Positions 29,188 through 29,889 of a stretch of DNA of 64,000 nucleotides are shown one piece after another (position 1 is the first letter of the stretch; each line of letters begins with the position of its first letter). A program made the translations under genes and the position numbers. This DNA comes from Haliotis cracherodii (lineage: Eukaryota), in the NCBI RefSeq assembly GCF_022045235.1, contig NW_027266265.1, forward strand, positions 38,130,001 to 38,194,000, given 5' to 3'. The notes under the pieces are model-generated. The model had not been told where the DNA came from, ran no database searches, and saw only the letters and a list, made by a program, of their open reading frames with translations.

Positions 29188-29889
29188 ATGCCTCCAACAT
29201 TGCGTCGACGAAAGGCTGGACTTTCATACAGATCTAACTATGAAGGCCAGTCATTTGCAACCTCACAAGCACAGATAAAATGGAGCAAAACCCAGCTCTT
29301 TGATGTCAGAATAATAGACACCAAACAAGAAGGATCAGTAACAAAGTACAAAGTTCACTACATTGGCTGGCCCTCCAAGTATGACCAATGGGTTGAGGAC
29401 TCAAACATTGTAACAAGGTCAAGCCTGGAGAAGACAGGCACACAGGACATTTTCATATTTCAACTTTTGAACTCAATCAAGGACAACCTCACATGCTCAC
29501 GCGGTGTAGATTCTTTGGTGTTCATCCGTTTTCCTATCTCATCCCCAGAGGTTGCCAGCTCTCTGTTGGAACTGTCAACAAAAACACTTCAATCGAAGAC
29601 TGGACATCTGTACAGGAGTGAATTCACCTTCCTGGATGTACACTCACCAGACATCCTCTTTGGACAGGACTGGTGGTACAGGATCATAAACCCAGCTGGT
29701 GACTTTGGCTATATCAACAGGGAAACTGTCCGCTTTGGATTCTATGAGAGAAAACCCCGTGAAGAGTACACCACTGACATGAAACGAAAATTGGTACATC
29801 GCGGATTTATCTTCTTCATGCAGTTTGTGAGGGAGAAAGGAAACATGATGGATATCAACCTTCTGAGGTGTACACTGGGAGTAGTGTAG
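29188..29889 (+). CDS. Chromo-barrel (Tudor-knot) domain protein, ~233 aa, probable transposon accessory protein
   Basis: Open frame from 29155, first ATG at 29188 (MPPTLRRRK, NLS-like). LFDVRIIDTK...YKVHYIGWPSKYDQWV matches the HYxGWxxxxDxWV signature of MRG15/MOF/Esa1-type chromo-barrels. The C-terminal ~150 aa is not recognised. Confidence 0.8.
   Translation: MPPTLRRRKAGLSYRSNYEGQSFATSQAQIKWSKTQLFDVRIIDTKQEGSVTKYKVHYIGWPSKYDQWVEDSNIVTRSSLEKTGTQDIFIFQLLNSIKDNLTCSRGVDSLVFIRFPISSPEVASSLLELSTKTLQSKTGHLYRSEFTFLDVHSPDILFGQDWWYRIINPAGDFGYINRETVRFGFYERKPREEYTTDMKRKLVHRGFIFFMQFVREKGNMMDINLLRCTLGVV

Follow-up and report, generated by a model that had tools for sequence, protein, structure and literature searches.

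The 233-codon open reading frame at positions 29188–29889 (+ strand) of the analysed window, a stretch of 64,000 nucleotides from the black abalone Haliotis cracherodii, is intact and lies in a young transposon beside a transposase gene whose profile matches to RAG1 are weak. Analysis of this frame (ORF1) revealed a separate, conserved protein with a predicted chromo barrel of the type that reads histone marks and a second domain of no recognised fold, which recalls how RAG2 guides RAG1 in vertebrate immunity. The sequence-only reading had described a transposon-borne Tudor-knot protein with an apparently intact aromatic cage and an unrecognised C-terminal domain, and every part of this observation was confirmed. 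Its interpretation was partly supported: the fold assignment, the intact cage, the unrecognised domain and the purifying selection all held, whereas its proposals that the protein steers insertion or counters silencing, and that the C-terminal domain binds the transposase, are plausible but remain inferences from sequence alone.

Structure of the element and its copies

Comparison of the window with the genome (1.18 Gb in 80 contigs) revealed copies on contigs C16, C67 and C56 that align at 98.6–99.3% identity exactly over the same span (27963/4–33437) and are unrelated outside it, confirming that ORF1 is transposon-borne. Three full-length copies of ORF1 are 99–100% identical in protein, and about 20 more diverged or decayed copies are present in the genome. 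In the otherwise 98.6%-identical copy on C56 (C56:36121887–36122589), ORF1 is split into two frames near residue 189, while the transposase frame is intact. A (CA)n microsatellite in the 5′ non-coding part (window 28860–28960) and about 100 bp before it are missing from the C67 and C56 copies. The window copy itself sits inside an old, abundant repeat (27700–27962 and 33438–33740), whose other copies are 67–84% alike.

Features of the transposon in the window (positions are those of the window)
Position	Strand	Feature	Basis
27963..33437	+	Whole transposon (5.47 kb) carrying both genes	Limits of alignment shared with copies on C16, C67 and C56
27964..27977	+	5′ terminal inverted repeat CAAACCAAAACATA	Pairs with 33424–33437; 14 nt, 86% complementary
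33424..33437	+	3′ terminal inverted repeat TATGTTTTGACTTG	Pairs with the 5′ repeat
29188..29889	+	ORF1, 233-aa putative accessory protein, ATG at 29188 to TAG at 29887–29889	Intact frame, family, selection, structure model
29188..29280	+	ORF1 residues 1–31: basic N-terminal tail with conserved R6 / Y14 / L17 motif	R6 in 39/42, Y14 in 37/44, L at position 17 in 32/44 family members; median pI 10.4; pLDDT 66–74
29281..29424	+	ORF1 residues 32–79: predicted chromo barrel with aromatic pocket F38, Y58, W61 (+Y65)	Pfam scores above cut-off; superposition on MRG15; conserved pocket columns
29425..29844	+	ORF1 residues 80–219: modelled α/β domain without assignment; near-invariant K98, L101, G159, W162, R165, N168, D172, F213	
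29845..29886	+	ORF1 residues 220–233: short C-terminal helix and variable end	Modelled helix 220–229; family pattern GN..D(L)..FL followed closely by the stop codon
29890..30040	+	Spacer between the two genes, within a possible GT..AG intron (29868–30024) that would keep the frame	Contigs of three runs read straight through 29749–30041, 29783–29980 and 29768–29918 with no joint
30041..32296	+	ORF2, RAG1/Transib-like transposase, 751 aa from the conserved ATG; the open frame starts at 29981	Weak profile match to RAG1/RAG1L

ORF1 is followed after about 150 bp by the transposase frame of 751–771 aa. A six-sequence profile of this transposase returned 12 PDB hits at E ≤ 1, of which 11 were RAG1 or amphioxus RAG1L (best E 0.0019 for RAG1 and 0.027 for RAG1L), aligned over the second catalytic Asp with the CxxC pair and over the H..H...E block. 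A single-sequence search found nothing, so this relationship is remote and rests on a weak profile match.

Predicted chromo barrel and C-terminal domain of ORF1

The sequence features described for ORF1 beforehand were all present: YKVHYIGWPSKYDQWV lies at 29347–29394 and is preceded by LFDVRII, RRRK lies at residues 6–9, and ILFGQDWWYRIINPAGDFGYINRETVRFGFYE lies at residues 156–187. The absence of a Tudor or chromo fold from profile searches had been named in advance as grounds for rejecting the assignment; however, the Pfam models MSL3_chromo-like (PF22732; 30.2 bits, cut-off 28) and Tudor-knot (PF11717; 22.3 bits, cut-off 20.8) both passed their curated cut-offs on residues 30–82, whereas the classical Chromo model did not (21.4 bits, cut-off 25.1). 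The two passing models also match 19 and 15 family members, respectively. The best PDB sequence match was Eaf3 (E 1.9e-7), followed by another Eaf3 homologue, RBBP1, MRG701, MRG2 and MRG15.

A first structure model built with 5 sequences reached a pLDDT of only 59 and was discarded in favour of an AlphaFold2 model built with a 115-sequence alignment, which gave a mean pLDDT of 90.8 and a pTM of 0.76, with pLDDT of 91–98 in the barrel. In this model, residues 34–76 superpose without gaps on residues 22–64 of human MRG15 (2f5k) at 0.6–0.7 Å over 43 residues, and on Arabidopsis MRG2 bound to H3K4me3 or H3K36me3 (4pl6/4pll) at 0.9 Å. This register places F38, Y58 and W61 on Tyr26, Tyr46 and Trp49, the pocket described for MRG15, which binds H3K36me2/3 (PMC1747190). 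Across the family these columns are aromatic in 48/50, 65/75 and 74/78 sequences (96%, 87% and 95%), and a fourth position, Y65, is Y/F in 56/72; the cage is therefore intact and selected for. The position before the barrel that is His21 in MRG15 is mostly Ser in the family (24 of 46 members).

Residues 80–219 were modelled with pLDDT mostly 95–98, as a long helix followed by an antiparallel sheet of about eight strands with two short helices. The eight near-invariant residues of this domain are conserved in about 90% or more of sequences, W162, R165, N168 and D172 forming a hairpin, and the domain is mildly basic (median pI 9.2). No Pfam family matched residues 83–233 of the window protein, or this domain in any of 115 relatives; a profile found no PDB sequence even at E ≤ 10, the ESM Atlas gave no usable hit, and Foldseek against PDB and BFVD, as well as two rounds of VIA-align, gave only weak matches. 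No fold is assigned on this basis, and since the domain was modelled only within the whole protein, a new fold is not claimed. The possibility that it is a duplicated piece of the transposase was ruled out by profile alignment (hhalign probability 0.8%).

Conservation of ORF1 and its linkage to the transposase

A profile of the C-terminal domain alone found 242 cluster representatives at E ≤ 1e-3, and 64 at E ≤ 1e-10, among 1.84 billion. Almost all are 100–255 aa and stand alone; the full-length ones, of about 220–250 aa, carry this domain at about residues 85–225, behind the same basic tail and chromo barrel. Named members are 'uncharacterized' proteins of Haliotis rubra, H. cracherodii, the scallops Ylistrum balloti and Mizuhopecten yessoensis, and the sea cucumber Holothuria leucospilota. 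The finding defines a protein domain family of at least 242 clusters that is absent from Pfam and has no structural neighbour found so far. In contrast, two scans of bacterial and archaeal genome contigs gave no true relative, the single hit being a 28-residue chance match. Comparison of ORF1 with a 94%-identical copy gave a dN of 0.026, a dS of 0.135 and a ratio of 0.19–0.30, indicating purifying selection; against lineages about 50–57% identical, dS is saturated and dN is 0.44–0.51. With its near-identical full-length copies, its many relatives and this selection, ORF1 is not a chance open reading frame.

In at least 17 places in this genome, ORF1 hits lie directly upstream of transposase hits on the same strand. 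These span lineages down to about 35–50% identity, and include an intact pair on C1 (57% and 54% identity). In this diverged copy on C1, the spacer between the two genes (C1:59355423–59355926; 6424–6927 of locus L035) holds about 3.5 tandem copies of a 144-bp unit that repeats the last ~45 codons of ORF1. Outside Haliotis, linkage rests on just two short contigs: L040 has the same tandem order, whereas in the metagenome contig L042 the two genes are convergent, with the transposase 33% identical (E 3e-62) and ORF1 24% identical (E 2e-12). Three further intact transposase genes of 724–771 aa in the abalone genome (loci L037, L038 and L039; C12:69621282–69623549, C45:43316077–43318389 and C12:13467474–13469645) are only 22–23% identical to that of the window, and none has an ORF1 relative within its 10-kb locus, so that a second, single-gene branch of the same superfamily seems intact in this genome. 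The pairing is thus old and specific to one branch, and it does not depend on orientation. A divergent ORF1-like frame of 191 aa (C1:48149278–48149853, minus strand; 7279–7854 of locus L036) was found only by the family profile; its C-terminal domain is well kept, but the pocket motif of the barrel is lost (…FKVRCVGDTDAMDVW…) and there is no large ORF for a transposase nearby, and it may be decayed or domesticated.

We considered whether ORF1 is instead the first exon of the transposase gene, since splicing from 29867 to 30025 would join residue 226 in frame to the transposase and give one chromo-barrel–transposase fusion. A RefSeq model of a decayed copy on C12 (XP_071107251.1, 337 aa) joins the ORF1 tail, just after '...CLL', to transposase pieces at the same place, but it is probably an annotation artefact of a dead element. 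Contigs of three sequencing runs crossed the putative donor unspliced and no such joint was reported, family members end a few residues after the shared GN..D..FL motif, both abalone lineages keep an ATG where transposase conservation begins, and the convergent order in L042 makes fusion impossible there. A fusion isoform is therefore regarded as unlikely. The contigs of these runs lie on 29400–33231 and none on 27963–29243, which hints at transcription but proves nothing, as the runs are only guessed to be RNA. One contig of a run with a different organism label (X3) skips 85 bases of the transposase gene (31352–31438) with 7 other letters in between, which is a deletion variant, not an intron.

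The reading of ORF1 as a passenger, a captured host gene fragment with no role in the element, draws on the resemblance of the barrel to host MRG15/Eaf3 proteins. However, ORF1 has no MRG domain, it has been conserved with the transposase down to 24% identity and across phyla, and its dN/dS is low; this reading is already disfavoured and very unlikely.

Proposed role of ORF1 and comparison with known systems

The analysis itself establishes that ORF1 is a separate, conserved gene under purifying selection, that it is physically linked to this transposase family in different orientations, and that it combines an MRG15-type chromo barrel bearing a conserved aromatic pocket with a second, well-folded domain in the model that has no recognisable relatives. 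The function is inferred, no binding, interaction or transposition data being available. In the reading we favour, with moderate confidence, ORF1 is a stand-alone accessory protein of a two-gene, RAG1/Transib-like DNA transposon: the barrel would bind a methylated lysine on a histone tail, most likely H3K36me3 or H3K4me3 by its nearest relatives, and the C-terminal domain together with the basic N-terminal tail would hold the transposase or the transposon DNA, so that cutting or integration would be tethered to, or licensed by, a particular chromatin state. It would thus work like RAG2, whose PHD finger reads H3K4me3 for RAG1, or like LEDGF/p75 for lentiviral integrase, without being related to either. 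As the barrel is of the MRG15/Eaf3/MRG2 type and not the classical HP1-type chromodomain of chromoviruses, targeting of active chromatin fits better than heterochromatin or anti-silencing.

Chromo barrels of MOF and MSL3 also bind RNA or DNA, so the pocket need not read a histone, and MRG15-type barrels bind peptides weakly on their own. ORF1 could be a nucleic-acid-binding assembly factor for transposon DNA or an RNA, as the Myb-like protein of Harbinger and TnpA of CACTA elements are, with no histone reading involved. The definition of the Tudor-knot family by RNA binding, the presence of MSL3 barrel structures with DNA among the structural neighbours, and the basic tail and C-terminal domain are consistent with this view, whereas conservation of all three pocket aromatics is what methyl-lysine reading predicts, and a search for subterminal repeat arrays that could serve as binding sites found none beyond the 14-nt terminal repeat; we consider it unlikely. 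It is less likely still that ORF1 is a regulator which restrains transposition or, as in the counter-silencing idea of the sequence-only reading, shields the element from host silencing by occupying marked chromatin. RAG2's non-core PHD and hinge are reported to have inhibitory roles (PMC12337333), but the nearest barrels read marks of active chromatin, not H3K9me3 (PMC1747190), and no result here speaks directly for inhibition.

RAG2/RAG2L, the partner of RAG1/RAG1L in RAGL (ProtoRAG) transposons, is the most instructive analogue, given the RAG1/Transib-like partner enzyme. In both cases a second gene lies adjacent to the transposase inside a RAG1-like transposon, convergently in ProtoRAG and L042, and in tandem upstream in Aureococcus RAGL (PMC9435367) and the abalone, and encodes a methyl-lysine reader module (predicted in ORF1) plus a larger domain. 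However, ORF1 has no Kelch or PHD hit in Pfam and no propeller among its structural neighbours, its putative reader is a chromo barrel at the N-terminus, the protein is less than half the size, and there is no detectable sequence or fold relationship; it is an analogy only. Published accounts state that Transib elements carry a single gene, and the origin of the RAG1–RAG2 pairing is an open question (PMC7204232, PMC9435367). If the favoured reading holds, a widespread, apparently active family of RAG1-like transposons in marine invertebrates would always carry a different partner that also has a methyl-lysine reader, a natural second example of the same solution and an experimentally tractable system for asking why such transposases need a chromatin-reading cofactor. 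A more far-reaching possibility, which remains doubtful, is that ORF1 is an obligate cofactor that docks on the transposase and couples DNA cleavage or integration to a histone methyl mark, perhaps at the surface corresponding to the RAG2-binding α11–α12 region, which Tao et al. 2022 (PMC9435367) say the early-branching Transibs retain, without mentioning a partner gene. In that case the RAG1/Transib lineage would have recruited a chromatin-reading partner at least twice, by unrelated proteins, and the 140-residue C-terminal domain would be a previously undescribed fold dedicated to that partnership.

Among other systems, ORF1 belongs to the chromo-barrel fold class of MRG15, Eaf3, MRG2 and MSL3, but not to the MRG15/Eaf3/MSL3 protein family, since Pfam gave no MRG hit; its C-terminal part is modelled as a β-rich α/β domain, and the gene is transposon-borne and multi-copy. 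Chromovirus, Ginger and Polinton integrases also bring a chromatin-reader module into a mobile element, which in chromoviruses directs integration (Gao et al. 2008, cited in PMC3597677); those are classical chromodomains fused to the C-terminus of a retroviral-type integrase, whereas here a chromo barrel occurs in a separate protein beside a RAG1-like DDE transposase. The Myb-like ORF of PIF/Harbinger and TnpA of CACTA elements are second, non-catalytic proteins needed alongside the transposase in a cut-and-paste element, but they are DNA-binding proteins with Myb/SANT-type or other folds, and no such domain was found in ORF1 by Pfam.

Whereas Transib is described as a single-gene element with ends beginning CAC and a 5-bp target duplication (PMC7204232), this element has two genes, and a literature search, limited to open-access text, found no description of a Transib-like element with a chromo-barrel partner. 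Its ends (27963–27977 and 33424–33437, and those of the copies at loci L031, L032 and L034) begin CAA (CAAACC.../CAAGTC...) rather than the CAC reported as invariant for Transib/RAGL. Comparison of the flanks of four copies revealed no matching 5-bp target duplication in three of them, and a search for an empty site through the old repeat around the window copy gave only copies too degenerate for this purpose. Only the C16 copy has AATGGT near both ends, offset by one base.
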